From IMG/VR virus record IMGVR_UViG_3300042868_005134, positions 310,001 through 374,000 of that record: a stretch of DNA of 64,000 nt, one strand, 5' to 3'. The position numbers and the translations under genes were made by a program. Of the stretch, positions 14,403 through 56,555 are shown in pieces. Numbering within the stretch: the stretch's first letter is position 1; every line of letters begins with the position of its first letter. The notes below the pieces were generated by a model. That model made no database searches. It was not told the DNA's origin and was given only the letters and a program-made list of their open reading frames with translations.

Positions 14403-14756
14403 TTATTCCCCTACGTGATCGTAGAACTCATCTGCTACTGAAAAACTGCTTCCGCAACCGCATGTTGTTTGTGCGTTGGGATTTTTGATAGAAAACGTAG
14501 CGCCCATAAGATCTTCTTTATAATCTATTTCAGCATCGTTTAAGTATGTCATACTCATGCTGTCCACAAGCAAAGAAACGCCTGATTTTTCAATACTGAA
14601 ATCGTCATCGTTTTGTGCTTCGTCAAAGGTAAACCCATAGCTCATGCCGCTACAGCCCCCGCCTTGTACAAAAACACGCAATTTTAAGTTAGGATTGCTT
14701 TCTTCGGCTATTAAGTCTTTGATTTTTTCTACGCAAGAATCTGATAGTGTTAACAT
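14403..14756 (-). CDS. erpA: A-type Fe-S cluster insertion protein (ErpA/IscA, HesB family)
   Basis: [17 protein letters not shown] and [14 protein letters not shown] motifs. Confidence 0.92.
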
Positions 14757-15127: not shown

Positions 15128-15472
15128 ATGTTCAACACAATTAAAGAGTTTATTTTTGGAAAACCAGCACCAGTGGCTGATGTAGTTGCACCCGGTGGTG
15201 CACCATACAAAATCGATCCTGTTGTATCAGGTGAAGATAGAACTGGAGTTGCTAAGGAAACTCCAAGTCATATACAAAATGAACAACGTCAGCACACCGC
15301 AACAGTAGCAGAACACGTAGTTATTCCGGCCGGTACAGAAGCTTCAATTGCAGCACCTGTTAAGCAGCCACGTACTCCTAAAGCAGTTATAGAAAAGACA
15401 GTCGTAAAAAAAGCGGCCCCTGTTAAGAAGGCCGCCGCCATTAAAGCTGCCCCTAAGTCAAAGAAGGTCTAA
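15128..15472 (+). CDS. Hypothetical protein with Lys/Ala/Pro-rich tail
   Basis: Strong AGGAGG RBS; KKAAPVKKAAAIKAAPK C-terminus. Confidence 0.7.
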   Translation: MFNTIKEFIFGKPAPVADVVAPGGAPYKIDPVVSGEDRTGVAKETPSHIQNEQRQHTATVAEHVVIPAGTEASIAAPVKQPRTPKAVIEKTVVKKAAPVKKAAAIKAAPKSKKV

Positions 15473-16495
15473 TTCTTTAGCCCTGTTAGCTAGTGTAAAA
15501 CTAGCTAAGTTTTTGCCCTTAGATTCGCACATAATATCATGTGTGTCTAAAAAGCTCAAAGCCCAATCATTAACACTACTATTCCAGTAGAAGTTAGAGT
15601 GGGCTCTGAGCTTTTGTCTTTTATAACCAGATTCAATTAACTGTTTAAAGTCGGGCATAGTTTTGTCACAGTGATCAACAAGGCAATCTTCCCTACTCAC
15701 GCTATAATGAATAACAGGCCGGACACCGCGCCAGCTGTCAATTATGCGTAATACTCTATCATCGGAGGGTTGAATGTAACCTCCAGTATTGATCCAGTTA
15801 TGGTGTATATCAAGCACAAGGGCGCAGTGATTGACAAGTTCGAGACTGCTATCAACTCCCCAGGACATTTCGTCGTTTTCAATTGTGATAACGTTTCTTG
15901 CTTCGGGGGTAAGTCGTCCGAGTACATCTTTAATGCCTTGGGGACCTTTTCGACCCGAAATGTGTACGTTGACTTTAAAGTCCTGGAACGACTTACCGTA
16001 TCCCATCCACCGGGCCATATCCACATGATATTCAAACTCCTCTATACTTCTATTTACAATATCTGGAGTATCACTAGCAAGCACAGTAAACTGACCAGGG
16101 TGCATAGACAGGCGAACACCCATCTTGCGAGACAGATCTCCCACGATTCGAAATTCTCTTTCGCAATAGGCTCTAACGTCGCTAGTCCGCCAAAACCAAG
16201 CCCAATCACACTGAGTGTACACAGGCAGGATATCGCTGCTGAGTCGTACCATTCTAAGATTTTCATCAAGTGTTCCTACACGTTCAACAAGTTTGCGGAT
16301 ACTTTCGATGTTACCTTTCATGAGGTCCCACAGCTTTTCTACTGCCACATCCTTGTGCTGTCTATTTAACCAAGAAACTGTAGTGCTACCTGTGTTAAAG
16401 ATTTTACAGTCATCCTTGGGTTTAATGCCGTTAACTTGCTCGGGACGATCAATCCATTTACAAGCAAAACCAATACGCTTAATCATATTAACCAA
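15458..16495 (-). CDS. uvsE: UV damage endonuclease (UvsE/UvdE family)
   Basis: RIGFACK, RLSSDILP, RLSMHPGQF, IENDE, LDIHH, AHS motifs. Confidence 0.9.
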   Translation of the reverse strand: MVNMIKRIGFACKWIDRPEQVNGIKPKDDCKIFNTGSTTVSWLNRQHKDVAVEKLWDLMKGNIESIRKLVERVGTLDENLRMVRLSSDILPVYTQCDWAWFWRTSDVRAYCEREFRIVGDLSRKMGVRLSMHPGQFTVLASDTPDIVNRSIEEFEYHVDMARWMGYGKSFQDFKVNVHISGRKGPQGIKDVLGRLTPEARNVITIENDEMSWGVDSSLELVNHCALVLDIHHNWINTGGYIQPSDDRVLRIIDSWRGVRPVIHYSVSREDCLVDHCDKTMPDFKQLIESGYKRQKLRAHSNFYWNSSVNDWALSFLDTHDIMCESKGKNLASFTLANRAKELDLL

Positions 16496-16555: not shown

Positions 16556-17110
16556 TTATTCAAACAAGTTTTCATTCCATTCTCTATGACCTTCTCGGAA
16601 AGCCATATTGCTTTGTGTCTCACGCACTTCAACACGATAACACCACAGCCGCTTGCTTTCGCCTTCACCCCACATCTCAGGAATGTAAACTCCGTTAACG
16701 TATTTGTAAAGCATATCGCTAAGACCTTCACAGCCTAGTTTTGGAAGAACAACAATTTTAGCCATGTTACGTTCTTGTAGCAGTTTGAATGTAGCCATTT
16801 CTGGATCATCTTGCGCCACAATAAGTGTATGATCAAATTGGTCTTCTAGGATCTTTTTAAGTTCTTTTAAACCACCATAGTCTGCCGCCCAATTACGAAC
16901 GTCGAGATCATTAGTTCCAAAATAAAACTTCATACTAAACGAGTAACCGTGAATTAAATTACAGTGACTGTCAGATCGCCATTGGCGATAAGCGCAAGGG
17001 AATGAGTCGTGATACTCTTTTGTGCTTGTGTACTTATACAACACCGGTTTAGTGTTTTCTAAGTTGTCTTCTAAGTGACGAATTAAGTCACTGGTTGATG
17101 ATATTGCCAT
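16556..17110 (-). CDS. queD: 6-carboxytetrahydropterin synthase / PTPS-like protein
   Basis: HCNLIHGYS, DYGGLK, FDHT, VEVRET motifs. Confidence 0.8.
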   Translation of the reverse strand: MAISSTSDLIRHLEDNLENTKPVLYKYTSTKEYHDSFPCAYRQWRSDSHCNLIHGYSFSMKFYFGTNDLDVRNWAADYGGLKELKKILEDQFDHTLIVAQDDPEMATFKLLQERNMAKIVVLPKLGCEGLSDMLYKYVNGVYIPEMWGEGESKRLWCYRVEVRETQSNMAFREGHREWNENLFE

Positions 17111-17118
17111 TATATTCT

Positions 17119-17180
17119 CCTATGTTAAATTATAGCATAGGCGGCAGAGTTTGTAAAGCGGGAGTGACGCCAAGACCGCT
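17119..17180 (-). promoter_or_regulatory. Candidate preQ1-I-like riboswitch/pseudoknot in the queD leader
   Basis: AGCGG/CCGCT stem; loop GGCG complementary to downstream CGCC; competing CCTATG/CATAGG hairpin covers the AGGAG RBS. Confidence 0.45.
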
Positions 17181-17190
17181 AGACTAATAT

Positions 17191-17757
17191 TTATTGTTTG
17201 CGTTCCCACACCCAATATAATCGTTCATTTCGCTGATTTTCAAATTCCACAACAGGTTGCGTATATAGTTCTAAACCATATAATTTACCTGCTTCTATTA
17301 TATCAGCTAAGTTCCATATATAAAATATGTCAGCTATGCCTTGCTTTCGACTGGCCAAGCTGGCTAGTGTCCTACATCGCATAAACAATCGTCCGTTAAC
17401 CTTAAGCCATTTACTAATGATACTTAATTGATTAAATGTATGAACTTTGTTGCCAAAATGTAAACTACCTAACGCAACTATTGCATCCGCAGATTCTGGC
17501 TCAAAATGAACAGTTTCTATATCTGCTTGTAAGTCAGCGGTAGGATAAGGTAGTCGATCAAACCCTATAAGATTTTTAACATGCGGTTTTAACTGATTGA
17601 AACCGCATCCAACATCGATCACTAACAACGGACTCATCGAATTTAACTCTTTAGCAAGGGTAAATAGCGTTCGACGATGATCTGGATTCGTAGGACTACC
17701 CGGCGGATTATTGATATCCGGCAGATAAGTCTTATCAATCTTATCTTGCAATGACAT
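17191..17757 (-). CDS. Class I SAM-dependent methyltransferase
   Basis: VIDVGCGFN motif I; ALGSLHFG; paralogue of 20148 and 60228. Confidence 0.8.
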   Translation of the reverse strand: MSLQDKIDKTYLPDINNPPGSPTNPDHRRTLFTLAKELNSMSPLLVIDVGCGFNQLKPHVKNLIGFDRLPYPTADLQADIETVHFEPESADAIVALGSLHFGNKVHTFNQLSIISKWLKVNGRLFMRCRTLASLASRKQGIADIFYIWNLADIIEAGKLYGLELYTQPVVEFENQRNERLYWVWERKQ

Positions 17758-45744: not shown

Positions 45745-45821
45745 TGGTCGGAGTACAAGGATTCGAACCTTGGACCCCCTGGTCCCAAACCAGGTGCGCT
45801 ACCAGACTGCGCTACACTCCG
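45745..45821 (-). tRNA. tRNA-Pro(TGG)
   Basis: Cloverleaf; loop TT-TGG-GA; CCA. Confidence 0.95.
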
Positions 45822-45823
45822 AA

Positions 45824-45976
45824 TTAACTTGCTACAATATGCGGTATATATGGAACTGCTCTTGGACCACCATACAGTTGCTCGAAAAGTTTTTTAGCCT
45901 CTTGCGGTGTATCCGCATAGATACGTTTCTTTTCTTCACCTTGAGGTGTTCTTACAGTTGCTTCATACATTGGCAT
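45824..45976 (-). CDS. Hypothetical protein (50 aa)
   Basis: AAGGA RBS; MPMYEATVRTPQG... Confidence 0.55.
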   Translation of the reverse strand: MPMYEATVRTPQGEEKKRIYADTPQEAKKLFEQLYGGPRAVPYIPHIVAS

Positions 45977-45990
45977 ATTGTATCCTTAAA

Positions 45991-46066
45991 TGGTACCTGG
46001 TGTCAGACTCGAACTGACATCGTTCTCCGTGTAAAGGAGATGCATAACCTCTCTGCGCAACCAGGC
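45991..46066 (-). tRNA. tRNA-Val(TAC)
   Basis: TCTCC-TTTACAC-GGAGA; CCA. Confidence 0.9.
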
Positions 46067-46075
46067 ATTAAATTT

Positions 46076-46149
46076 TGGAGCGGGATGGGAGAATCGAACT
46101 CCCGACATTAGATTGGAAATCTAAGGTAATGCCATTTTACGAATCCCGC
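46076..46149 (-). tRNA. tRNA-Gly(TCC)
   Basis: TTAGA-TTTCCAA-TCTAA; CCA. Confidence 0.92.
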
Positions 46150-46488
46150 ACACTTTATAGGTGCTCTCTGTGGCGCTTGAATCCACGGCAGCCCTTCTCT
46201 TCATGGCCGGTCCTTGCTTTGGTCGACGTTGGCAAGTTTCTCGGTGTTCCATTGTAGCTACTCAGAAAGCACGTATAAAGTGTCCGGCTACTCACACCAC
46301 ATGAGCCCCGGACTGAGCAGTTACTCTGTCCATAACATTTTCTTCTTCTGGAAAGGCTGTTAATCCTCACCCTAGGCAGTTTCCAGTATCCCTTAAATGG
46401 GGACTGTGAGGTCAGGTCCTAGTGTACCCTCTGGTCTATCGTTACAGAGACGCTATTTCGTTACGTAGAAATAGTAAGACGGGTTTTT

Positions 46489-46610
46489 AACAGGATAGGC
46501 TTTGCCTTATTTTTTATTTAAAACTTGACAAAGCGAACAAGTTCGTCCGGGTCGCCCCAGACCTTTGATACGGTTATTCACCGTTAGTGGTTTGCTGTCT
46601 CTATCCTAAA
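46489..46610 (-). ncRNA. Family-1 Y-like RNA, copy 3
   Basis: AGGATAG-AGACAGCAAA...CTATCCT-GTT with internal hairpins. Confidence 0.7.
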
Positions 46611-46612
46611 AC

Positions 46613-46687
46613 TGGTGCCCAATGTCTGATTCGAACAGACGACCTACCGCTTACAAGGCGGTTGCTCTACCCCTGAGCCAATCGGGC
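46613..46687 (-). tRNA. tRNA-Thr(TGT)
   Basis: ACCGC-CTTGTAA-GCGGT; CCA. Confidence 0.95.
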
Positions 46688-46693
46688 TATATG

Positions 46694-46876
46694 TTACTTA
46701 TTTGTTGCTGTCTGTATATTATAATTGATTTGACTTTGTTTGTCAAGTCTTTCAAATTCTTCATCTTCAAGTTTGGCTTCTTCTAGACGCCTAGGATCAG
46801 GCTTTCGAAAAATAGTATCATAATTCGAACCAAATGCTTTCAAATCTGTTGGACGTTGTTTACTGCCCTTACTCAT
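46694..46876 (-). CDS. Hypothetical protein
   Basis: AGGAG RBS; MSKGSKQRP...NYDTIF. Confidence 0.55.
   Translation of the reverse strand: MSKGSKQRPTDLKAFGSNYDTIFRKPDPRRLEEAKLEDEEFERLDKQSQINYNIQTATNK
46718..46746 (-). promoter_or_regulatory. Consensus sigma70 promoter
   Basis: TTGACA-17 nt-TATAAT. Confidence 0.8.
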
Positions 46877-46895
46877 AATAAACTCCTACTATTCT

Positions 46896-46971
46896 TGGTG
46901 GAGGTGACAAGGATCGAACTTGCTACATCCTGCTTGCAAAGCAGGCGCTCTCCCAAATGAGCTACACCCCC
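46896..46971 (-). tRNA. tRNA-Ala(TGC)
   Basis: G3:U70; CCTGC-TTTGCAA-GCAGG; CCA. Confidence 0.95.
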
Positions 46972-46977
46972 AAATAT

Positions 46978-47053
46978 TGGCTCCACAGCCTGGGCTCGAA
47001 CCAGGGACCAATTGATTAACAGTCAACTACTCTACCAACTGAGCTACTGCGGA
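46978..47053 (-). tRNA. tRNA-Asn(GTT)
   Basis: GTTGA-CTGTTAA-TCAAT; CCA. Confidence 0.95.
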
Positions 47054-47060
47054 ATAATTC

Positions 47061-47282
47061 TTAAACTTGAGTACTTGCTGTACCCGTATCATTTGTTTGG
47101 TAATTTGCGGCACCCTGTGGACGCTTGTTATCTCGCGGTTCACGTTTTGGAACAATGGCAGCGGCTAATTCTGCTTGGATCATTGCTCTCTTAAATTCGT
47201 TACGCTCATGTGCGTCAACGATAGTACACATGAATCTTTTTGACTGCTTACTGAGCTTGAATGTCTTGTTTGGTTTTAACAT
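47061..47282 (-). CDS. Hypothetical protein
   Basis: AAGGT RBS; MLKPNKTFKLSK... Confidence 0.6.
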   Translation of the reverse strand: MLKPNKTFKLSKQSKRFMCTIVDAHERNEFKRAMIQAELAAAIVPKREPRDNKRPQGAANYQTNDTGTASTQV

Positions 47283-47302
47283 AATTACCTTTTTAAAAAA
47301 CT

Positions 47303-47392
47303 TGGCGGAACGACTGAGACTCGAACTCAGAACCCGGATTACGCCGAGCGACAGATTAGCAATCTGCTCTAATACCATTATAGGACCGTTCC
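47303..47392 (-). tRNA. tRNA-Ser(GCT)
   Basis: GCAGA-TTGCTAA-TCTGT; long variable arm; CCA. Confidence 0.9.
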
Positions 47393-47402
47393 ATATATAC
47401 TA

Positions 47403-47512
47403 TGTAGCTGGGAGGCTTCGAACCTCCATGGAATCCTGGATTATATCCTGACCCGTCCCCTGACCTATGCTATGAGCATAGCGGGAGCTTTGCCTATTTG
47501 CTTACAGCTACA
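47403..47512 (-). ncRNA. tRNA-like RNA with extended CAT anticodon arm, no CCA
   Basis: GTAGCTG/CAGCTAC acceptor; GGAGG-TTCGAAG-CCTCC T-arm; CTATG-CTCATAG-CATAG stacked on an extra CCCG/CGGG helix. Confidence 0.65.
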
Positions 47513-47517
47513 CAGTA

Positions 47518-47546
47518 ATTATACAATCTAGCTGTGAGTATGTCAA
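47518..47546 (-). promoter_or_regulatory. Consensus sigma70 promoter
   Basis: TTGACA-17 nt-TATAAT; predicted start coincides with the 5' end of the tRNA-like RNA. Confidence 0.8.
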
Positions 47547-47552
47547 GTGTTT

Positions 47553-47627
47553 TGGCGGGTCTTGAGAGGATCGAACTCCCACCCTCGGTTTCGAAGACCG
47601 AGATGATATCCATTTCACCAAAGACCC
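47553..47627 (-). tRNA. tRNA-Arg(TCG)
   Basis: TCGGT-CTTCGAA-ACCGA; CCA. Confidence 0.88.
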
Positions 47628-47631
47628 TAAC

Positions 47632-47706
47632 TGGCCTCGCCACCCGGAATCGAACCAGGATCTACTCTTTAGGAGAGAGTGGTTCTATCCATTGAACTAT
47701 GGCGAG
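47632..47706 (-). tRNA. tRNA-Arg(CCT)
   Basis: ACTCT-CTCCTAA-AGAGT; CCA. Confidence 0.92.
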
Positions 47707-47714
47707 ATATAAAT

Positions 47715-47806
47715 TGGTACCAGCGGAGGGAATCGAACCCTCTCAAGAACGCTAATCTGGCGCTAAAAGGCTTATAAGACCTCTCTGACTTCCAAGTCTC
47801 GCTGGC
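47715..47806 (-). tRNA. Atypical tRNA, anticodon TAT (Ile by anticodon)
   Basis: Short D-arm GACT-TGGA-AGTC; loop CT-TAT-AA; long variable arm; CCA. Confidence 0.7.
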
Positions 47807-47817
47807 ATAAAAATGAA

Positions 47818-48036
47818 TTTGTTAAAGATGTTCCACCACATTATAGGAACCATTCACCCGAATTAACAAGCTCGAGCGGGATTCGGTAAGTTACTTGGAA
47901 TACTTGTCCAGCTTGCAACCGATCTGCCCGCGGACACTACGTGCCCGGGTGGGAGTCGAACCCATTACCTTCTACTATATCAGTCCTTCGAAGAAACCTA
48001 GATAGCGTGACTTTCTCTTGCTAACACTCTAACAAA
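47818..48036 (-). ncRNA. Structured RNA with internal T-arm and loop-closed stem
   Basis: Terminal TTTGTTAGAG-TGTT/AACA-TCTTTAACAAA pairing; TGGG-TTCGACT-CCCA followed by CGGGCAC-GTA-GTGTCCG. Confidence 0.5.
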
Positions 48037-48039
48037 ACT

Positions 48040-48113
48040 TGGAGCGGGATAGGAGAATCGAACTCCTGACTAAACCTTGGCAAGGTTTCGTTTGACCATT
48101 AAACTAATCCCGC
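48040..48113 (-). tRNA. tRNA-Gly(GCC)
   Basis: AAACC-TTGCCAA-GGTTT; CCA. Confidence 0.93.
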
Positions 48114-48120
48114 ATTATAT

Positions 48121-48197
48121 TGGTGCCCAGGGCGAGACTCGAACTCGCAAAATTTGGCTTCTAAGACCAACACGTATACCAATTCCATCACCTGGGC
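48121..48197 (-). tRNA. tRNA-Leu(TAG), short variable loop
   Basis: TTGGT-CTTAGAA-GCCAA; CCA. Confidence 0.88.
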
Positions 48198-48203
48198 TTA
48201 ATT

Positions 48204-48277
48204 TGGATGCGGGTGACAGATTCGAACTGCCGATGCACCTGGCTTATGAGACCGGTGTGGTAACCACCCTACCCGCG
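48204..48277 (-). tRNA. Atypical tRNA-Met(CAT), initiator-like C1:A72 mismatch
   Basis: CGCGGGT/ACCCGCA; loop CT-CAT-AA; reduced D-arm; CCA. Confidence 0.7.
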
Positions 48278-48287
48278 TAACTATTTA

Positions 48288-48518
48288 TTATCTGACTCTT
48301 CGCAGATAATCTGAATTGATTTTTCCACTCTGTATTTCTAACAGAGCTGTAACCGGAGCATTCAATTGCTCAGGACTTTCACTTAATCTGTGTTGCCTTG
48401 CCAATTCTCTTGCTCGAATTGCGGCAACAATAACAAGGTCGAATCTGTTGCCTATGTTGCTAACACAGATATCGGTATTGATATCTGTTCCCCGACTTGC
48501 TATATTATTACGTTTCAT
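48288..48518 (-). CDS. rpoZ: RNA polymerase omega subunit homologue
   Basis: IGNRFDLVIVAAIRAREL...PVTALLEIQSGKI. Confidence 0.85.
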   Translation of the reverse strand: MKRNNIASRGTDINTDICVSNIGNRFDLVIVAAIRARELARQHRLSESPEQLNAPVTALLEIQSGKINSDYLRRVR

Positions 48519-48538
48519 AAGTTTCCTATTAAAAAAAT

Positions 48539-48612
48539 TGGCGTACCCACTAGGACTCGAACCTAGACTGACGGTTTTGGAGACCGCGATGCTGCCATTA
48601 CACTATGGATAC
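48539..48612 (-). tRNA. tRNA-Trp(CCA)
   Basis: GCGGT-CTCCAAA-ACCGT; CCA. Confidence 0.92.
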
Positions 48613-48766
48613 ATATTGAATTTGTCTATCGTCACACAATGTCCAAGTCGTGCGCTGAACCCTACTGCTATTACGTTCGGGCTTGCTACGGGCTTCGAGT
48701 ACATACACAAGTGTCTTGGGCGACTCGCGTATCACATAAGGGTAACCGTACACACATAAACAAAAC

Positions 48767-48843
48767 TGGCGCCCCGCAGGGGACTTGAACCCCTGACCCT
48801 CGGCGTGACAGGCCGATACTCTAACCAACTGAGCTAGCGGAGC
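48767..48843 (-). tRNA. tRNA-Asp(GTC)
   Basis: TCGGC-CTGTCAC-GCCGA; CCA. Confidence 0.95.
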
Positions 48844-48850
48844 AGAAACT

Positions 48851-48928
48851 TGGAGCAACGAGAGGGATTTGAACCCCCGGTTTTACGGATTTGCAATCCG
48901 TTGCATTGGGCCACTCTGCCATCGTTGC
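48851..48928 (-). tRNA. tRNA-Cys(GCA)
   Basis: ACGGA-TTGCAAA-TCCGT; U73; CCA. Confidence 0.92.
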
Positions 48929-48934
48929 ATAAAT

Positions 48935-49019
48935 TGGTGGAGATTACTGGGATCGAACCAGTCGTGCCCGAAGGCGGCGGATTTACAGTCCACTGCATCA
49001 CCATTGATGCTTCATCTCC
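48935..49019 (-). tRNA. tRNA-Tyr(GTA)
   Basis: GTGGA-CTGTAAA-TCCGC; variable arm; CCA. Confidence 0.9.
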
Positions 49020-49020
49020 A

Positions 49021-49090
49021 TATAGAAACACACTAACACCGCTGGCAAAGTAATTATATTACTTGATACGATACCTAATGTATTTCTATA
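49021..49090 (-). ncRNA. Family-2 long-stem element
   Basis: TATAGAAATACATTA/TAGTGTGTTTCTATA stem; inner AAGTAAT-ATA-ATTACTT. Confidence 0.5.
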
Positions 49091-49166
49091 TGGCGTCCCT
49101 ACGGGGATTCGAACCCCGGTACTCACCGTGAAAGGGTGATGTCCTAGGCCTCTAGACGATAGGGAC
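49091..49166 (-). tRNA. tRNA-Glu(TTC)
   Basis: TCACC-CTTTCAC-GGTGA; CCA. Confidence 0.95.
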
Positions 49167-49219
49167 AAAATTCACAATTGATTTTTTAAAGAACAGTGTT
49201 AATTTCTTAACATGTACTT

Positions 49220-49248
49220 ATTATAGCGTCTTCTGAGGTTGCTGTCAA
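49220..49248 (-). promoter_or_regulatory. Consensus sigma70 promoter heading tRNA array A
   Basis: TTGACA-17 nt-TATAAT. Confidence 0.85.
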
Positions 49249-49260
49249 CTACTTTTTGAA

Positions 49261-50679
49261 TTATTTTAAATTATATTCTAAATAATTCTTAAAAAATTCT
49301 TTATTTTTTTCAGCAAGTAACTTATAGTCTAGGTCTTGTTTGTTTGTATTCATTATTTCAGAAAACTCAAAACCCGCACTCGCATGTTCTCCCAAACGCC
49401 AAGACGTTGGCTTACCAATATGGTCCATTATAGAATTTAGTGACTTAGAAAATTCTGTTACTGTTTTTGCGTCCCAGTAATCGTTTTCCCAAAACTCTGT
49501 CTGTAATGGTTTCATAAATCTGTAACCGTACTGGCTATAGTTCTCATCAAACTTACTTTTGTAGGCCGAAGCTGGATCTCTAGATATCCCTAATGGATTA
49601 AATCTCCAATCATACATTTCATTGTCCAAACACCACTGATGAGTAGCGTATAAATCTTCTCTAGTTTCACCAGTTAGCCCAGCAATAAAACTCAATTCAA
49701 ATGTTATTTCGTCTTTCCATGTTTGCTTTAATGTTTGTAAAAATTCTTTTCCGTGTACGCCATTCCAACCTTTACCTACAATTTTACAAGCATCCTTATG
49801 AAAACTTTCAATTCCAAAGTATGCGCTTTTGAGTCCTGAGTCTTTTAATTGCTGTATTGAACCTGGTCGAGATCCTATCAAATCTAATCGATTGTAGCCA
49901 ATCCATTCTAACTTAAATGGTAAATTTTGTACTATTTCAGTTATAGCTTCCATTTTTTCCTGACTCTCGTTAACTGTATCATCAATGAAAAAATATCTAG
50001 TTGTACCAAACGTTTCGTAATTGTACATAAGTTCTTCCTTAACCAAGGAATAATCTCTTAGATAAGTATTTTTCTTTTTACCTAGATTAGGATATCTGCA
50101 AAATGAACAAGAAAACTGACAGCCCCGACCTAATTCAATTGGCAACACTTCGTACGATTGAACAAAGTCATCTTTCACAAAAGCAGGACTAAGTGTTTTA
50201 ATATCAAAAGGTGTCCGCGTTAACGATACATTAGATTCCTGATCTAGAAATTTTAATAAATCATTCTCAGCATTTCCGTGCAGCTTAATCCAATCTAAAT
50301 AGCAATTTTTTGCGTATGAATTAGAGCCTCCTAAAATCCATTTTAACTGAGGGAACTTATTTTCAAGTAGTGGCCTCGAGTTTAAAATCCATTCGGGTTC
50401 GCTCACTACCATAGATAGTCTGCCAGTCGTTGTTGCTTTGCGTAATGCCCCGTCGTGCCAAAATGTAGAACTTACACCTATGCCTATAGTTGTAGAGTCT
50501 ACAAATTTCGAAGTTACTTCAACTAATTCATTAGTAGTAAATTTCTGACAAAAGTCTATTACTTTAACAGTATAGCCATGTCTCCTTAACCATGCGGCTA
50601 ATTGATACGGACCCAGTGGTCTCGTATGTCCCGATTTATCTGGTAGATAAATCGAATTCCAAATTATAAAATGTGCCAT
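49261..50679 (-). CDS. B12-binding-domain radical SAM protein
   Basis: RPLGPYQLAAWLRRHG N-terminus; ELGRGCQFSCSFC; FIDDT; GIES. Confidence 0.88.
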   Translation of the reverse strand: MAHFIIWNSIYLPDKSGHTRPLGPYQLAAWLRRHGYTVKVIDFCQKFTTNELVEVTSKFVDSTTIGIGVSSTFWHDGALRKATTTGRLSMVVSEPEWILNSRPLLENKFPQLKWILGGSNSYAKNCYLDWIKLHGNAENDLLKFLDQESNVSLTRTPFDIKTLSPAFVKDDFVQSYEVLPIELGRGCQFSCSFCRYPNLGKKKNTYLRDYSLVKEELMYNYETFGTTRYFFIDDTVNESQEKMEAITEIVQNLPFKLEWIGYNRLDLIGSRPGSIQQLKDSGLKSAYFGIESFHKDACKIVGKGWNGVHGKEFLQTLKQTWKDEITFELSFIAGLTGETREDLYATHQWCLDNEMYDWRFNPLGISRDPASAYKSKFDENYSQYGYRFMKPLQTEFWENDYWDAKTVTEFSKSLNSIMDHIGKPTSWRLGEHASAGFEFSEIMNTNKQDLDYKLLAEKNKEFFKNYLEYNLK

Positions 50680-50712
50680 GAGATATTTATTGTACTATCG
50701 ATCTCATGAAAA

Positions 50713-51378
50713 TTAACTAATATGTAGGACAGGAATAGTTACTTTCGGTTTTGCTGGATATTTTAAATCTGGTTTTGTATGATGAATCCGTCTGTTTCTA
50801 TTAATATCTTTATAACCAACTCCTAAAATTATCATAGGCTGTCCCTGGATATTTAACACTGTCTGAAGACCGGCTATATCAAAGCATCCGCAATAACCTG
50901 TTGAGTATCCTAATTGATGTGCTAATAGATTCAAGTATCCACTAGCTATACCTATGGACATGTGAATGTCGATTAACATACGTTTCTTTGCCGTATCCGA
51001 CACTAAGCCTGCTGGATGTCTAAACTCTTCAAAGTACGTATTCAAATACGGCCTGTCTGAATTAGCTGTAAGTATATCTGCTAGTGTTAACTGTTCGAAT
51101 ACTACTAACATGTTTGCCAATGTTTGTGAATTATTTTCTATGCTCATTGAGGGTGGAAAATCGAAACCACTTGTATTGTTGTAAACTTGTTCTATTACAG
51201 TCCGATTAGTAATAAAATGGCATCGATAAAATGCAGCATTTTGTTTACTGGGGCATTGGGTTACTGCTTCAACTAATAAGTCGATATCTTCTTGCGGAAT
51301 TGATCGTGTTAAATCCCAATTTCGTTGGCAATGTTGACTTTTTTGAATAGTAATTTTTACTGCTGATTTATCGATCAT
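50713..51378 (-). CDS. Nitroreductase family protein
   Basis: QRNW...IP...CPSKQN; IGIASG...LGYSTGYCG; GVGY. Confidence 0.8.
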   Translation of the reverse strand: MIDKSAVKITIQKSQHCQRNWDLTRSIPQEDIDLLVEAVTQCPSKQNAAFYRCHFITNRTVIEQVYNNTSGFDFPPSMSIENNSQTLANMLVVFEQLTLADILTANSDRPYLNTYFEEFRHPAGLVSDTAKKRMLIDIHMSIGIASGYLNLLAHQLGYSTGYCGCFDIAGLQTVLNIQGQPMIILGVGYKDINRNRRIHHTKPDLKYPAKPKVTIPVLHIS

Positions 51379-51411
51379 AATTTCTCTTTAGTTAAAAAAT
51401 TATTTATCGTT

Positions 51412-51485
51412 TGGTGCTCCTAGGAAGGATCGAACTTCCAATTACACTATACCAAAGTGTCGGTATTCCATTTACCTATAAGAGC
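51412..51485 (-). tRNA. tRNA-Thr(GGT)
   Basis: ACACT-TTGGTAT-AGTGT; CCA. Confidence 0.9.
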
Positions 51486-51487
51486 GT

Positions 51488-51562
51488 TGGTACCGCTTAG
51501 TGGAATCGAACCACTATTCACACTTTAGAAGAATGTTGTCCTATCCATTGAACGAAAGCGGT
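51488..51562 (-). tRNA. tRNA-Arg(TCT)
   Basis: ACATT-CTTCTAA-AGTGT; CCA. Confidence 0.9.
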
Positions 51563-51569
51563 AAAATTT

Positions 51570-51645
51570 TGGCAGGGGAGATGAGATTCGAACTCATGAT
51601 GACGATTTCAAAGACCGTTGCCTTAGGCCACTAGGCGACACCCCA
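51570..51645 (-). tRNA. tRNA-Gln(TTG)
   Basis: ACGGT-CTTTGAA-ATCGT; CCA. Confidence 0.88.
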
Positions 51646-51653
51646 ACAAATAA

Positions 51654-51776
51654 AACAGGATACGTTTTTTACGAAGGGCATGGAGCCCTTTGCTCAACCG
51701 CTGAGCGAATCTGCCATAAGGCAAATGTTGGAATCGAACCAACGTGTCATAAATGACTTTGCTGTGCGTATCCTTA
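51654..51776 (-). ncRNA. Family-1 copy 4: YrlA-like circularly permuted tRNA mimic
   Basis: AGGATACG/CGTATCCT helix + ACAGCAAA enclosing T-arm, loop-closed acceptor stem, D-arm and anticodon-like arm, in that order. Confidence 0.8.
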
Positions 51777-51779
51777 ACT

Positions 51780-51899
51780 TGGTGTCGTTGCTGGGATTCG
51801 AACCCAGATCTCTTCCTTTAGAGTGGAATTTTGATTGTGCTGACTGTATCCTTAACAGGATAACCTTTTATAAGCGTCCTACCATTAGACGACAACGAC
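51780..51899 (-). ncRNA. Family-1 copy 5: 120 nt tRNA-like RNA with internal family-1 helix and CTA loop
   Basis: GTCGTTG/CAACGAC-ACCA; D- and T-arms; insertion TATCCT-GTTA-AGGATA-CAGTCAGCA; TTCC-ACTCTAAA-GGAA. Confidence 0.7.
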
Positions 51900-51904
51900 A
51901 TGAC

Positions 51905-51981
51905 TGGTACCCCTAGGCAGATTCGAACCGCCATCCAGCAGATTTTAAGTCTACCCGCACTACCAATTAGCGTACAGGGGC
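51905..51981 (-). tRNA. tRNA-Leu(TAA), short variable loop
   Basis: GTAGA-CTTAAAA-TCTGC; CCA. Confidence 0.88.
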
Positions 51982-52158
51982 ATAAATATTTTTGTGAAAA
52001 CTTACGATCACTTAACACCGCAAGGATTACAGTTTCACCTTTGTTTGTACCAAGGTGTGTGCTGTGTTATGGTACACGATATATACGACAACACCTACTT
52101 CGAATTACAATACTTCACTGACGTTAACAAAGCACTTCGCTTTGTCAACAATTTATAA

Positions 52159-52235
52159 TGGTACCCCTTGTCTGATTCGAACAGACAGCCAACTCCTTTT
52201 GAGAGAATCCGCACTACCAATTAGCGTAAAGGGGC
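52159..52235 (-). tRNA. tRNA-Leu(CAA), short variable loop
   Basis: Loop CT-CAA-AA; CCA. Confidence 0.88.
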
Positions 52236-52238
52236 ATA

Positions 52239-52315
52239 TGGTACCTTCGGGCGGGTTCGAACCCCCAACCAACAGTTTCTAAAACTATCCGCACTCCCAA
52301 TTAGCGTACGAAGGC
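52239..52315 (-). tRNA. tRNA-Leu(TAG), short variable loop
   Basis: Loop TT-TAG-AA; CCA. Confidence 0.85.
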
Positions 52316-52326
52316 ATTTAAATTTT

Positions 52327-52401
52327 TGGTAGTCGATGCTGGGTTCGAACCAGCGACCTACACGATGTCAACGTGGTGCTCTACCACTGAGCTAATCGAC
52401 T
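52327..52401 (-). tRNA. tRNA-Val(GAC)
   Basis: Loop TT-GAC-AT; CCA. Confidence 0.92.
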
Positions 52402-52402
52402 A

Positions 52403-52477
52403 TGGTACCCTTGGACAGTTTCGAAATGTCGACCCTCGCCTTATCAAGACGATGCTCTTCCTCTGAGCTACAAGGGC
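52403..52477 (-). tRNA. tRNA-Ile(GAT)
   Basis: TCGTC-TTGATAA-GGCGA; CCA. Confidence 0.9.
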
Positions 52478-52491
52478 ATAAACTACTTAGG

Positions 52492-52562
52492 GGTGACTAT
52501 CGGGGCTCGAACCCGAACTACCAGAGTCACAGTCTAGGTTGCTACCATTACAACATAGCCAC
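52492..52562 (-). tRNA. tRNA-His(GTG), no encoded CCA or G-1
   Basis: CTAGA-CTGTGAC-TCTGG; C73. Confidence 0.85.
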
Positions 52563-52574
52563 ACCTAAATAGTC

Positions 52575-52648
52575 TGGTCCTCTCGACAAGAATCGAACTT
52601 GTAATGGCCGGTTATCAGCCGACTGTTATACCATTTAACTACAAGAGG
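52575..52648 (-). tRNA. tRNA-Ile(GAT)
   Basis: GTCGG-CTGATAA-CCGGC; CCA. Confidence 0.88.
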
Positions 52649-52654
52649 AATAAA

Positions 52655-52720
52655 AACAGGATAGCATTTTTTGGCTTTTTTTACAGAAAAGATTTTTTTG
52701 ATTTGCTGTTGCTATCCTAA
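52655..52720 (-). ncRNA. Family-1 copy 6: mini RNA with GTA (Tyr) anticodon stem-loop
   Basis: AGGATAGCA/TGCTATCCT; ACAGCAAA; CTTTT-CTGTAAA-AAAAG. Confidence 0.75.
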
Positions 52721-52722
52721 AC

Positions 52723-52812
52723 TGGCAGTGAGTAAGGGATTCGAACCCTTGGGCCCCTAGCGGAGCCGACAGTTTAGCAAACTATTGGGTTAAGCCACTC
52801 CCCCAACTCACT
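52723..52812 (-). tRNA. tRNA-Ser(GCT)
   Basis: ATAGT-TTGCTAA-ACTGT; variable arm; CCA. Confidence 0.9.
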
Positions 52813-52974
52813 ATATAGGTTTTCCCGGCGACCAACTATCTTTCTTAAGGACTCGCTGGCTTGTCTCGTGTGAAAGAGTTTATACAGACCTTGTACAATT
52901 CTACTGGCGTGTCATGCTCAAGAAATAGGGCACTAGAATACAAGGGACTCATCTCAACGTCTAGCTGGGAAACT

Positions 52975-53066
52975 TGGCGGAAGACGGAGGAGTCGAACCC
53001 CATCCCATTTCTGAGAACCCAGTTTTCAAGGCTGGTCGGCGCACCAACGCACCTGCATCATCTTCC
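52975..53066 (-). tRNA. tRNA-Ser(TGA), 8/4-type cloverleaf
   Basis: 8 bp acceptor GGAAGATG/CGTCTTCC; 4 bp T-stem; 6 bp D-stem; loop CT-TGA-AA; CCA. Confidence 0.8.
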
Positions 53067-53072
53067 ATAACT

Positions 53073-53147
53073 TGGTGCTCCCTCACGGACTCGAACCGCA
53101 ATAACCGGACTACAAAACCGGTATAATAGCCTTTATATTAAAGGAGC
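53073..53147 (-). tRNA. tRNA-Thr(TGT)
   Basis: Loop TT-TGT-AG; CCA. Confidence 0.85.
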
Positions 53148-53152
53148 AAATT

Positions 53153-53227
53153 TGGCGCCCACATATGGAATCGAACCACAATCCCCGGTTTCGTAAACCA
53201 GTATATTATCCATTATACTATGCGGGC
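53153..53227 (-). tRNA. tRNA-Arg(ACG)
   Basis: CTGGT-TTACGAA-ACCGG; CCA. Confidence 0.9.
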
Positions 53228-53232
53228 AAATT

Positions 53233-53307
53233 TGGTGGTAATAGTAGGATTTGAACCTACACCTTGCTCCGTATGAAGGAGGTGCACTACCGTTATGCTA
53301 TATTACC
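53233..53307 (-). tRNA. tRNA with CAT anticodon (Met or Ile2)
   Basis: Loop TT-CAT-AC; CCA. Confidence 0.85.
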
Positions 53308-53308
53308 A

Positions 53309-53402
53309 TATAGAAACACACTAGAGTTTTACGATAAACTACGCTCCTGAGTTTCTGCCCAAGAGCTCATAGGTCTGCCTATGTTTCTAATGTGTTTTTA
53401 TA
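53309..53402 (-). ncRNA. Family-2 long-stem element with three inner hairpins
   Basis: TATAAAAACACATTAGA/TCTAGTGTGTTTCTATA; CATAGG/CCTATG; GCTCTTGGG/CTCAGGAGC; AGTTT/AAACT. Confidence 0.55.
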
Positions 53403-53477
53403 TGGTAGGGGCACAGGGAATCGAACCCTGATAGACCGGTTAAAAGCCGGATATTCTAGCCGTTGAATTATACCCCC
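53403..53477 (-). tRNA. tRNA-Lys(TTT)
   Basis: Loop CT-TTT-AA; CCA. Confidence 0.9.
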
Positions 53478-53480
53478 ATA

Positions 53481-53556
53481 TGGTCCACAGCGTCAGATTC
53501 GAACTGACACCTCATCGGTTAAGAGCCGAGTACGCTACCGTTAACGCCAGCTGTGG
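53481..53556 (-). tRNA. tRNA-Lys(CTT)
   Basis: Loop CT-CTT-AA; CCA. Confidence 0.88.
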
Positions 53557-53641
53557 ATGGATCGTAAATATTTTCTTTTACGTGCCATCCAGGACCATAC
53601 GGGATCCGGGATGACACTACAGTTTACCTGTACGTTTCATG

Positions 53642-53770
53642 TCATTCTCCTTTGTTGATATTTCTCTTTTGTGCTTGGCGTTCTGATTTCCAGAACACTC
53701 GTTTCCAATCTTTCAAATGCTTCCACCATTGTGGAGGCGCAGTTAGGTTACCTTTTTTGACATTTGCCAT
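53642..53770 (-). CDS. Small basic Trp-rich protein (42 aa)
   Basis: AAGGA RBS; MANVKKGNLTAPPQWWKHLKDWKRVFWKSER... Confidence 0.55.
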   Translation of the reverse strand: MANVKKGNLTAPPQWWKHLKDWKRVFWKSERQAQKRNINKGE

Positions 53771-53786
53771 AGGATTTCCTTTATAA

Positions 53787-53846
53787 AACAGGATGCTTAT
53801 TTTTCAATTAAAAGTTGAATTTTTGAATTTGCTGTTCGCATCCTAA
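53787..53846 (-). ncRNA. Family-1 copy 7: mini RNA with TTT (Lys) anticodon stem-loop
   Basis: AGGATGC/GCATCCT; ACAGCAAA; TTCAA-CTTTTAA-TTGAA. Confidence 0.75.
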
Positions 53847-53848
53847 AA

Positions 53849-53924
53849 TGGTACACCCTGTTGGAATCGAACCAACTTCAACGGCTCTTCAGACCGCCGC
53901 TATGACCACATCAGCTAAAGGTGC
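53849..53924 (-). tRNA. tRNA-Phe(GAA)
   Basis: GCGGT-CTGAAGA-GCCGT; CCA. Confidence 0.88.
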
Positions 53925-53932
53925 ATTATACT

Positions 53933-54008
53933 TGGTCTCCCTACCAGGATTCGAACCTGGACCACACGGCCCCAAACCGTGTACGCAACCTGATAACGCT
54001 TTAGAGAG
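53933..54008 (-). tRNA. tRNA-Pro(TGG)
   Basis: CACGG-TTTGGGG-CCGTG; CCA. Confidence 0.88.
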
Positions 54009-54015
54009 ATAAAAT

Positions 54016-54090
54016 TGGTGGAGGCCGAGGGAATCGAACCCTTCTAGTCACGATGCTTGCAAGGCAACGCCGTAGCCCACTACTGCCCCC
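54016..54090 (-). tRNA. tRNA-Ala(TGC), reduced D-arm
   Basis: G3:U70; GTAG-TGGG-CTAC; loop CT-TGC-AA; CCA. Confidence 0.8.
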
Positions 54091-54160
54091 AATTACAAAG
54101 CATACTATTCTAACTCGTCAAAAGAGTCTGCGTTATACGTCTTTAGTATACTTTGTAATT
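54091..54160 (-). ncRNA. Family-2 long-stem element
   Basis: AATTACAAAGTATACTA/TAGTATGCTTTGTAATT; inner GACTC-TTTTGAC-GAGTT. Confidence 0.5.
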
Positions 54161-54237
54161 GGCTGTCCGACTAGGGATCGAACCTAGCTCATTCTTCGTT
54201 AACAGCGAAGCGCCTACACCATGCTTGCTCTCGGACA
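54160..54237 (-). tRNA. tRNA-Asn(GTT)
   Basis: CTTCG-CTGTTAA-CGAAG; CCA. Confidence 0.85.
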
Positions 54238-54244
54238 ATAAAAT

Positions 54245-54320
54245 TGGCGCCATGGACGGGACTCGAACCCGCCTGGTACGGATAGACAATCCGCTGCCCT
54301 ACCCCGAGGACTACCATGGC
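54245..54320 (-). tRNA. tRNA-Asp(GTC)
   Basis: GCGGA-TTGTCTA-TCCGT; CCA. Confidence 0.88.
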
Positions 54321-55529: not shown

Positions 55530-56555
55530 CTAGATTACATGTTTAGTTACCATAATTTCGTCAACTGTTAGACACTGTGATCGTCTACATATAGTTGGAA
55601 TTGTGTTGAAAACTATTTCATCGTTGAACACATTGCCAATCTTGCCATCGTTCTTACAAATGCCAAAGTGCATGTCGCCGTTGGCATCTATAGCAAGTTT
55701 TTTCATTCCTACATTACAACTCCAGCCTTTGAACTTGTTTAAGTCTTTCATTATAATAGAGTATGCACTTGCCTGTGTAGTTTTAATTATGCCATCTTCT
55801 TCTACAGTTAAGTTTATCTTAAAATTTTTTCGATTGTTAGTGGGTGCTGCGTTTTTACGCTCATCCTCTATTGATTTAATAATAGCTTTTTCGTCTTCGG
55901 AAAAATAATCAAGAGTTAAATCAGACTTTTGTGTGTAATCTTCAAGGTGTCTACTTGTTTGGAATGGCAAATTAATGTGCTGGGTAGTAGTGTTTACTAA
56001 TGGGAATATAATAAGTTTGTTAATGCCAATCGAGTGCGGTTTTAACTTTTCTTCTAACACATTCACTCTATCGAACAGCGTAGGCACCAGCATGGCCCGT
56101 ACTTCAACTTTGCCGCCATTTTCTTTTAGACGCACTGCAAGATTAACAAATTTTTCAATATCTGCGGTTTCTGGATGAAAACTAAGAAATATGTTAACAG
56201 ATTTTAAAGCTTCGCTACAACGCTCGTACATCTTTGCGGGCATACTACCATTAGTAAAAATAAAAATCTTAAACTTGTGTTCTACTAATCGTTGTAAGAA
56301 TAACTCAAAATTTGGTATGAGAAAAGGTTCGCCGCCAGTTAGTACTACTAACACAGTTTTATCTTCCGGCACTGCTGCCTTTATCTTGTCCGATACTGCC
56401 ATTAAGTCTTCGACTTTTGGCATTGTGTTAACATCTATAGTTCTGTGATTGTAAGGCTCGCAATAAGAACAGTCGTAATTACACATATCAAGTGGCTTCC
56501 AATGTACAATGTAATCAGTTAACCAATTGTCTTTTTCAATTCTTAGGAGATTCAT
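55530..56555 (-). CDS. Radical SAM protein with SPASM/twitch-like C-terminus
   Basis: CNYDCSYC; TGGEP; TNGS; SFHP; C-terminal Cys residues. Confidence 0.88.
   Translation of the reverse strand: MNLLRIEKDNWLTDYIVHWKPLDMCNYDCSYCEPYNHRTIDVNTMPKVEDLMAVSDKIKAAVPEDKTVLVVLTGGEPFLIPNFELFLQRLVEHKFKIFIFTNGSMPAKMYERCSEALKSVNIFLSFHPETADIEKFVNLAVRLKENGGKVEVRAMLVPTLFDRVNVLEEKLKPHSIGINKLIIFPLVNTTTQHINLPFQTSRHLEDYTQKSDLTLDYFSEDEKAIIKSIEDERKNAAPTNNRKNFKINLTVEEDGIIKTTQASAYSIIMKDLNKFKGWSCNVGMKKLAIDANGDMHFGICKNDGKIGNVFNDEIVFNTIPTICRRSQCLTVDEIMVTKHVI

Follow-up and report, generated by a model that had tools for sequence, protein, structure and literature searches.

Does the short stretch of DNA in front of a queD-like gene in a giant lake-water phage encode a riboswitch, and if so, is it a member of the preQ1-I family? 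We analyzed a window of 64,000 nucleotides (positions 310001-374000) of the 383,411-bp IMG/VR virus record IMGVR_UViG_3300042868_005134, which is estimated complete. It carries 34 tRNA genes, and it recurs in lake-water metagenomes from more than 20 studies. An earlier note, made from the sequence alone, had proposed that the minus strand upstream of queD carries a TAAATA promoter-like motif, a 5-bp stem, and a loop-tail pairing (GGCG/CGCC) that together form an H-type pseudoknot of the preQ1 type. It had also proposed that the pseudoknot shares its CC with a hairpin occluding the ribosome-binding site (RBS), that pseudoknot formation would therefore switch translation on, and that the ligand may differ. 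Every sequence element described in that note was found letter for letter at its position (Table 1).

Table 1. Features of the queD leader and its flanking genes (window coordinates, all on the minus strand)
Feature	Position	Sequence	Remarks
Upstream ORF	17191-17757		188 aa; weak methyltransferase match; not part of the element
TAAATA box	17188-17193	TAAATA	Overlaps the TAA stop of the upstream ORF; 7 nt before P1; candidate phage promoter element
Aptamer-like core	17140-17180		41 nt; H-type pseudoknot
P1 5' strand	17176-17180	AGCGG	Pairs with 17157-17161
Loop	17162-17175		14 nt; comprises L1, P2 5' strand, and L2
L1	17172-17175	UCUU	Consensus N-C-U-u (agcGGnCTt with P1); C and first U at least 97% conserved
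P2 5' strand	17168-17171	GGCG	Pairs with 17140-17143
L2	17162-17167	UCACUC	Consensus tca--tCCC (into P1); final C at least 97% conserved, immediately 5' of the P1 3' strand, the position of the specificity C in preQ1-I (PMC11625349)
P1 3' strand	17157-17161	CCGCU	
L3	17144-17156	UUACAAACUCUGC (DNA, TTACAAACTCTGC)	A-rich part, then a nearly invariant UCUGC; consensus nTA-nAAAnTCTGC
P2 3' strand	17140-17143	CGCC	Switch strand, shared with the RBS sequestor
Sequestor 5' strand	17136-17146	UGCCG-CCUAUG	CCUAUG at 17136-17141
Ribosome-binding region	17105-17124		Contains the next five rows
Sequestor 3' strand	17119-17124	CAUAGG	In the SD; pairs with CCUAUG in the MFE fold
Shine-Dalgarno (SD)	17117-17121	AGGAG	
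Start codon	17108-17110	AUG	
Start-codon pairing strand	17105-17109	UGGCA	Spans the start codon; pairs with UGCCG in the MFE fold
GGCA	17105-17108	GGCA	
Embedded sigma70-type promoter	17129-17157		17-nt spacer
-35 hexamer	17152-17157	TTTACA	
Extended -10	17136-17137	TG	
-10 hexamer	17129-17134	TATAAT	
QueD-like gene	16556-17110		184 aa; PTPS family; regulated gene

Taken alone, the leader does not fold better than shuffled sequence (minimum free energy [MFE], -19.5 kcal/mol; z = -1.26), so the case rests on comparison with relatives. A protein-guided scan of IMG/VR returned 80 loci with QueD at 80 to 94% identity, out of 588 confirmed, and a motif pattern scan returned 120 more loci, of which 109 have a perfect stem and about 10 are chance matches without one. 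Together they give 187 instances, about 139 distinct leaders, and 116 to 118 distinct cores. On an unfitted MAFFT alignment of 45 distinct cores, and again with 100 distinct sequences, 99.6% of the P1 cells are paired, with double compensatory changes at 3 of 5 pairs, and RNAalifold finds exactly this helix with no input structure. Over the 100 distinct sequences, the pair types are A-U 88/U-A 11, G-C 90/C-G 8/U-A 1, and C-G 91/A-U 7/U-A 2, while the two G-C pairs are invariant.

The loop-tail helix P2 also covaries. Relatives of the GGCG/CGCC pairing include GGUG/CACC, GGCU/AGCC, GGCA/UGCC, GGACA/UGUCU, GGCAU/AUGCC, GACAU/AUGUC, GACUU/AAGUC, GACGC/GUGUC, and AUGGCAU/AUGUCAU. Column-based counts give 75 to 77% paired, with double changes at 3 of 4 pairs on the unfitted alignment and at 4 of 5 on the fitted one. 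For P1 and P2 together, 0 of 500 shuffles reached the observed paired fraction, number of double-change cells, or covariation score, and slid registers fell to 35 to 51% paired. It is important to note that the column counts for P2 are underestimates, because L2 is 5 or 6 nt long and neither aligner absorbs that difference; a covariance model with P2 as its helix did not fully fix the register either. To examine P2 without a register, we calculated loop-tail duplex energies. The mean cognate energy was -4.98 kcal/mol, compared with -1.60 for shuffled loops (z about -22) and -2.85 for shuffled tails, the cognate tail was better than noncognate tails in 85% of sequences, and there were 59 distinct P2 duplexes. 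Some members need a bulge or a mismatch (for example, GGACA/UGCC and ACG-U-CAU/AUG-U-CGU), and since the sequences come from related phages, the cell counts overstate the number of independent events. G-U pairs are common in P2 and occur in the RBS-pairing helices described below, which fits RNA of the queD sense strand and not DNA or the opposite strand. Thus, the structure seen in the single sequence is confirmed, with comparative support far beyond chance.

About 17 unpaired positions are at least 97% conserved. The consensus is agcGG-nCUu-(P2 5')-uca-uC-CCgcu-nUAnAAAnUCUGC-(P2 3'), in which L1 ranges from 4 to 10 nt, the whole loop from 13 to 20 nt, and P2 from 4 to 8 bp, and L3 is 13 to 14 nt in all sequences.

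The motif occurs once per locus (100 hits in 100 loci, 864 kb) and once in the whole 383-kb genome, where a covariance model scores it at 57.7 bits and the next hit at 15 bits. Neither a regular-expression search nor the covariance model found extra copies or a regulon in this genome, and nothing lies upstream of the phage's FolE/QueE locus. A QueD-like gene is the first gene after the motif in 179 of 187 instances. In a few loci a cupin or an unknown gene is interposed and queD follows one or two genes later, and in two loci the contig ends. Upstream neighbors differ between loci (HIT, methyltransferase, radical SAM); the element therefore belongs to the queD transcript. In 25 of 134 distinct upstream regions there is a sigma70 promoter of at least 10/12, eight of them 12/12, and in 23 of those 25 the -10 ends 7 to 8 nt before the first base of P1. 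A further 92 regions, including that of the window, have a TAA(A/G)TA box, mostly 5 to 11 nt before P1. In the 383-kb genome, TAAATA is the rarest of the 15 same-composition hexamers, yet 20% of its copies precede an RBS plus ORF, compared with 4 to 7% for most permutations. This supports it as a phage promoter box; the earlier note had called it promoter-like, and the T4 late promoter TATAAATA is similar. The predicted transcription start thus places the element at the 5' end of the mRNA, although evidence for the start is indirect. The only RNA data, a metatranscriptome in the form of assembled contigs, cover queD and the motif bin and give nothing over 17215-17698 in the upstream ORF, which is suggestive only, because contigs cannot show a 5' end and part of the signal is from relatives.

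We next asked how the pseudoknot relates to the RBS. Four platform designs exist. In group A, which includes the window, CCUAUG pairs with CAUAGG of the SD, with compensatory variants CCUAUA/UAUAGG in relative L142 and CUCUAUU/AAUAGAG in relative L181, and UCUAUG with a wobble. In group B, the P2 3' strand UGUCAUC pairs with GAUGGCA across the start codon, with the variants UGCCAUC and UGUCGUC, and relative L094 has GAUGACA. In group C, UGCCAUUG(UU) pairs with (AA)CAAUGGCA over 8 to 11 bp, and in group D, UGUCUU pairs with GAGACA. In every case the switch strand starts 0 to 5 nt after UCUGC; it is therefore the P2 3' strand itself or overlaps it by at least two bases. Both sides covary, and the mean helix score is 15.4, compared with 10.5 for shuffled switch strands. 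In the window, the MFE fold is P1 plus a two-tier sequestor with CGCC in its middle. Sequestors alone are worth -6 to -14 kcal/mol and are stronger than P2, so the predicted default state is closed and P2 formation should open the RBS. This supports the ON logic inferred in the earlier note. An OFF mechanism would need the ligand-bound state to lack the covarying P2, which is less parsimonious but is not excluded.

Such an equilibrium between a weak P2 and a stronger sequestor could in principle be shifted by temperature or Mg2+ rather than by a metabolite. We consider this very unlikely, because about 17 nearly invariant unpaired nucleotides are more than a thermometer needs and the strict coupling to one enzyme gene suggests metabolic sensing. 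A less remote, though still unlikely, alternative is a constitutively folded leader pseudoknot that serves as the operator for a phage or host RNA-binding protein, or as a 5' stabilizer or translation modulator, without a small-molecule ligand. The T4 gene 32 mRNA leader is likewise a phage 5'-leader H-type pseudoknot that controls translation of the downstream gene, and the conserved loops here could be protein contacts; the lack of a known ligand and the unusual ON logic for a biosynthetic gene also fit this view. However, the T4 pseudoknot is the nucleation site for an autoregulatory single-stranded DNA/RNA-binding protein, whereas the gene here encodes a metabolic enzyme. Further, the competing P2 and RBS helices are maintained in four different platform designs, which is the hallmark of a conformational switch, the architecture parallels a known metabolite-binding fold, and no candidate regulator gene travels with the motif.

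The earlier note missed a near-consensus sigma70 promoter inside the proposed structure, embedded in L3 and the sequestor loop. TTTACA-17-TGcTATAAT scores 11/12 with an extended -10 TG. In group A, 57 of 82 distinct leaders score at least 10/12, 17 more score 9, and 77 of 82 hairpin loops keep TAnnnT while positions 3 to 5 vary, a conservation pattern typical of a -10. Only 2 group A leaders have an upstream sigma70 promoter. In contrast, none of the 55 leaders of the other groups has an internal promoter of 10/12 or better, and 23 have the upstream one. So a predicted host-type promoter sits either before the aptamer or, in group A, inside it. Transcripts from the internal promoter would start near ACAUAGGAG, would lack both the aptamer and the anti-SD strand, and so would escape control; in group A, regulation may matter only for transcripts that start upstream. 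These data, together with the z of -1.26, could suggest that the region holds only DNA-level signals, a strong promoter for queD plus a weak hairpin after the upstream gene, with an incidental RNA fold. As a sole explanation this is contradicted: the P1, P2, L2, and L3 core is equally conserved and covarying in the 55 leaders without an internal promoter, the G-U pairs are strand specific, and P1 and P2 covary within group A as well, so the aptamer remains under selection there. Nor is the stem an intrinsic terminator of the upstream gene, since it has a 14-nt loop in the window and no U-tract, and a terminator scan does not list it. A leader peptide was also rejected, because the AUG-CUA-UAA mini-ORF in the hairpin is not conserved as an ORF across loop variants.

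Is the element then a divergent preQ1-I riboswitch that binds preQ1 or preQ0? A review of the family (PMC11625349) lists as hallmarks an H-type pseudoknot, a specificity C right before the P1 3' strand (UC in type I, AC in types II and III), UU after the P1 5' strand, an A-rich tail interrupted by a C in type I, and a P2 3' strand at the SD. The phage motif has the first two: the pseudoknot is supported by covariation, and the conserved C is preceded by U in at least 75% of sequences and otherwise by A or C. In L1, which is pyrimidine/U-rich, one variable base intervenes before C-U-u, and the A-rich tail is interrupted by a pyrimidine. P1 is 5 bp, L2 is sizeable, the predicted control is translational, and the gene downstream belongs to a 7-deazaguanine-pathway family (COG0720). 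However, L3 is about twice as long as in preQ1-I and carries an invariant UCUGC absent from the preQ1-I descriptions. P2 is longer, and its 3' strand is an anti-RBS strand rather than part of the SD, which in the leaders inspected lies roughly 13 to 45 nt downstream of P2; folding thus predicts ON rather than OFF. Comparison with the Rfam preQ1 models had been proposed as a check beforehand: Rfam 15 gave no RF00522 hit at the gathering threshold for the window, or at E <= 10 in a 200- to 400-nt search space for the window or the most preQ1-I-like variant, and no other riboswitch family, only spurious hits on other families or the opposite strand. We therefore do not file the element in the preQ1-I family and regard simple membership as unlikely. 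Our literature searches found no paper describing the motif. Translational ON riboswitches with competing helices, such as the add adenine riboswitch and guanidine-III, also use a ligand-stabilized fold that captures a strand otherwise masking the SD or AUG, and guanidine-III is also a small H-type pseudoknot, but their sequence and consensus are unrelated and Rfam matched none of them here. The THF-I and THF-II (folE motif) riboswitches control genes of GTP-derived pterin metabolism and recognize a guanine-like face, but they have different folds (a three-way junction with a pseudoknot and a hairpin with an internal loop), are OFF switches, and gave no Rfam match here.

The genes point to a GTP to H2NTP to CPH4 (to CDG) route. 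The downstream gene is of the PTPS/QueD family (Pfam PF01242, 8e-15; PHROG 2389 "QueD-like," 1.6e-34) but divergent, scoring 32.7 bits against the NCBIfam QueD equivalog cutoff of 89.25. Its only PDB relative is the CPH4 synthase 7v0f (E 2e-4), with IHGH replaced by IHGY. The phage encodes GTP cyclohydrolase I (FolE) and a QueE-like radical SAM protein about 75 kb away, and a search of the genome found no QueC or TGT-family gene. This lack also speaks against simple preQ1-I membership, as does the absence of the motif from the cellular genomes searched, apart from phage-like contigs. In some relatives a QueE-like gene directly follows queD, and in another the cluster reads FolE-HIT-x-rSAM-[motif]-QueD-B12 rSAM-glycosyltransferase-methyltransferase. 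The other downstream genes are mosaic.

The motif was found only on phage or phage-like contigs. A strict pattern scan of 185,579 cellular genomes gave 13 hits, of which only 2 were real, both on phage-like contigs in freshwater Bacteroidota MAG bins that each hold two motif-bearing contigs. In 150 other genomes of that order nothing exceeded 24 bits, and those hits have no stem. Because the pattern was strict, diverged cellular homologues are not excluded. Among 50,697 cultured-phage records, blastn of the leader found no aptamer match, and the 1.3-kb region had no DNA match.

We conclude that the element is a genuine, strongly selected cis-regulatory RNA pseudoknot of about 41 nt in a clade of freshwater jumbo phages. 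With moderate confidence, we read it as a translational ON riboswitch in which a small ligand stabilizes the pseudoknot, a new and, so far, phage-restricted riboswitch-like class with preQ1-I-like architecture. The analysis itself establishes the two helices, the competing helices, the position relative to predicted promoters, and the exclusive link to the queD-like gene. That a small molecule binds and acts as the trigger, the direction of switching, the identity of the ligand, and the activity of the promoters are inferred. An ON switch on a biosynthetic gene is unusual and would be illogical for preQ1 itself, and the model does not account for the invariant UCUGC. The interpretation in the earlier note is thus partly supported: the pseudoknot, the RBS-occluding hairpin sharing its CC, the ON logic, the caution about the ligand, and the promoter-like box held up, whereas membership in the preQ1-I family did not find support. 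Our guess is a ligand with a guanine-like face from the pathway, such as its substrate or an intermediate, a 7-deazapurine, or a pterin; for an ON switch, a substrate, an intermediate, or a guanine-like signal is more logical than preQ1. More tentatively, it is possible that this is a new class, found so far only in jumbo phages, that senses a metabolite other than preQ1 and turns on translation of the QueD-like enzyme, and that in one sublineage a host-type promoter has been built into the switch so that early transcripts escape control.

Riboswitch classes restricted to viruses are very rare, and none is known to have been described for the phage 7-deazaguanine or pterin genes that are widespread as auxiliary or DNA modification genes. 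With more than 100 distinct natural variants, clean covariation in both helices, and four natural expression platform designs, the motif is immediately testable as a roughly 50-nt RNA with a short list of candidate ligands. If a ligand is found, it would reveal which metabolite these giant phages monitor during infection, would help define the end product of their FolE/QueD/QueE plus radical-SAM gene sets, and would show how the preQ1-I-type pseudoknot scaffold can be rewired from OFF to ON.

We examined promoter-like signals around the RNA motif and across the phage genome (G000 in the table below). The TAAATA hexamer that precedes the motif is depleted genome-wide, with 285 copies, and is the rarest of the 15 permutations of its composition. 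Despite this depletion, 20% of its copies precede an RBS plus ORF within 110 nt, with a preference for A at −1, making TAAATA a candidate phage-specific promoter that is similar to the T4 late promoter. A second promoter-like site, TTGAAA-18-TATATT (10/12), lies inside the end of the upstream ORF, about 35 nt before P1, and could also feed aptamer-containing transcripts. Within the sequestor hairpin loop, just after the −10 hexamer, DNA runs showed a 1-nt length polymorphism of the T-run in about half of the contig depth, and one RNA-library contig showed 2 nt left out at the same place.

Features observed in the phage genome and in motif-bearing loci (window positions unless another sequence is named)
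Feature	Location	Strand
Large ORF, 2588 aa	6635-14401	minus
IscA-like Fe-S assembly protein	14403-14756	
UvdE UV endonuclease	15458-16495	
QueD-like enzyme	16556-17110	minus
Length polymorphism in T-run of sequestor hairpin loop	17127	
TAAATA hexamer	17188-17193	
Second promoter-like site	17214-17243	minus
tRNA genes	45748-54320	minus
Radical-SAM ORFs in the window (two)	about 49633-50139 and 56103-56492	
Radical-SAM cluster (twelve ORFs, outside the window)	G000 contig C1, 220000-237000	
FolE and QueE-like genes	G000 contig C1, 251141-254095 (locus L240, 5136-8282)	
Variant motif in locus L014	83-130	
Variant motif in locus L088	6573-6621	minus
Variant motif in locus L027	2941-2991	
Motif-bearing contigs of MAG bin G001 (locus L222)	contigs C1 and C58	
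Motif-bearing contigs of MAG bin G002 (locus L227)	contigs C25 and C2	

Among the related loci that carry the motif, we identified natural variants with a damaged P1. The variant in L014 has lost the 5′ strand, whereas the variant in L088 pairs AGCGG with CCGGU, giving one mismatch, and the variant in L027 has a U-U at the first pair. These variants may be recombinants or decaying copies. In addition, two freshwater Bacteroidota MAG bins (one Haliscomenobacter and one uncultured Bacteroidetes) each contained two motif-bearing, phage-like contigs, one of them 183 kb long. This reflects either mis-binned jumbo phages or a hint about the host.

The gene content around the motif and elsewhere in the genome was also examined. 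The QueD-like enzyme is divergent, scoring 32.7 bits against the 89-bit QueD cut-off, and it has IHGY where a solved CPH4 synthase has IHGH, so that its metal binding or chemistry may differ. FolE and a QueE-like gene sit together about 75 kb from queD, without the RNA motif, and no QueC or TGT-family gene was detected in the genome. Within the window, the 2588-aa ORF is followed by the IscA-like protein and the UvdE endonuclease, and a separate stretch of about 8.6 kb carries 34 tRNA genes. In total, the phage carries 14 radical-SAM ORFs of 320 to 477 aa, 12 of which are clustered in about 17 kb. This is an unusually radical-SAM-rich biosynthetic region for a phage.
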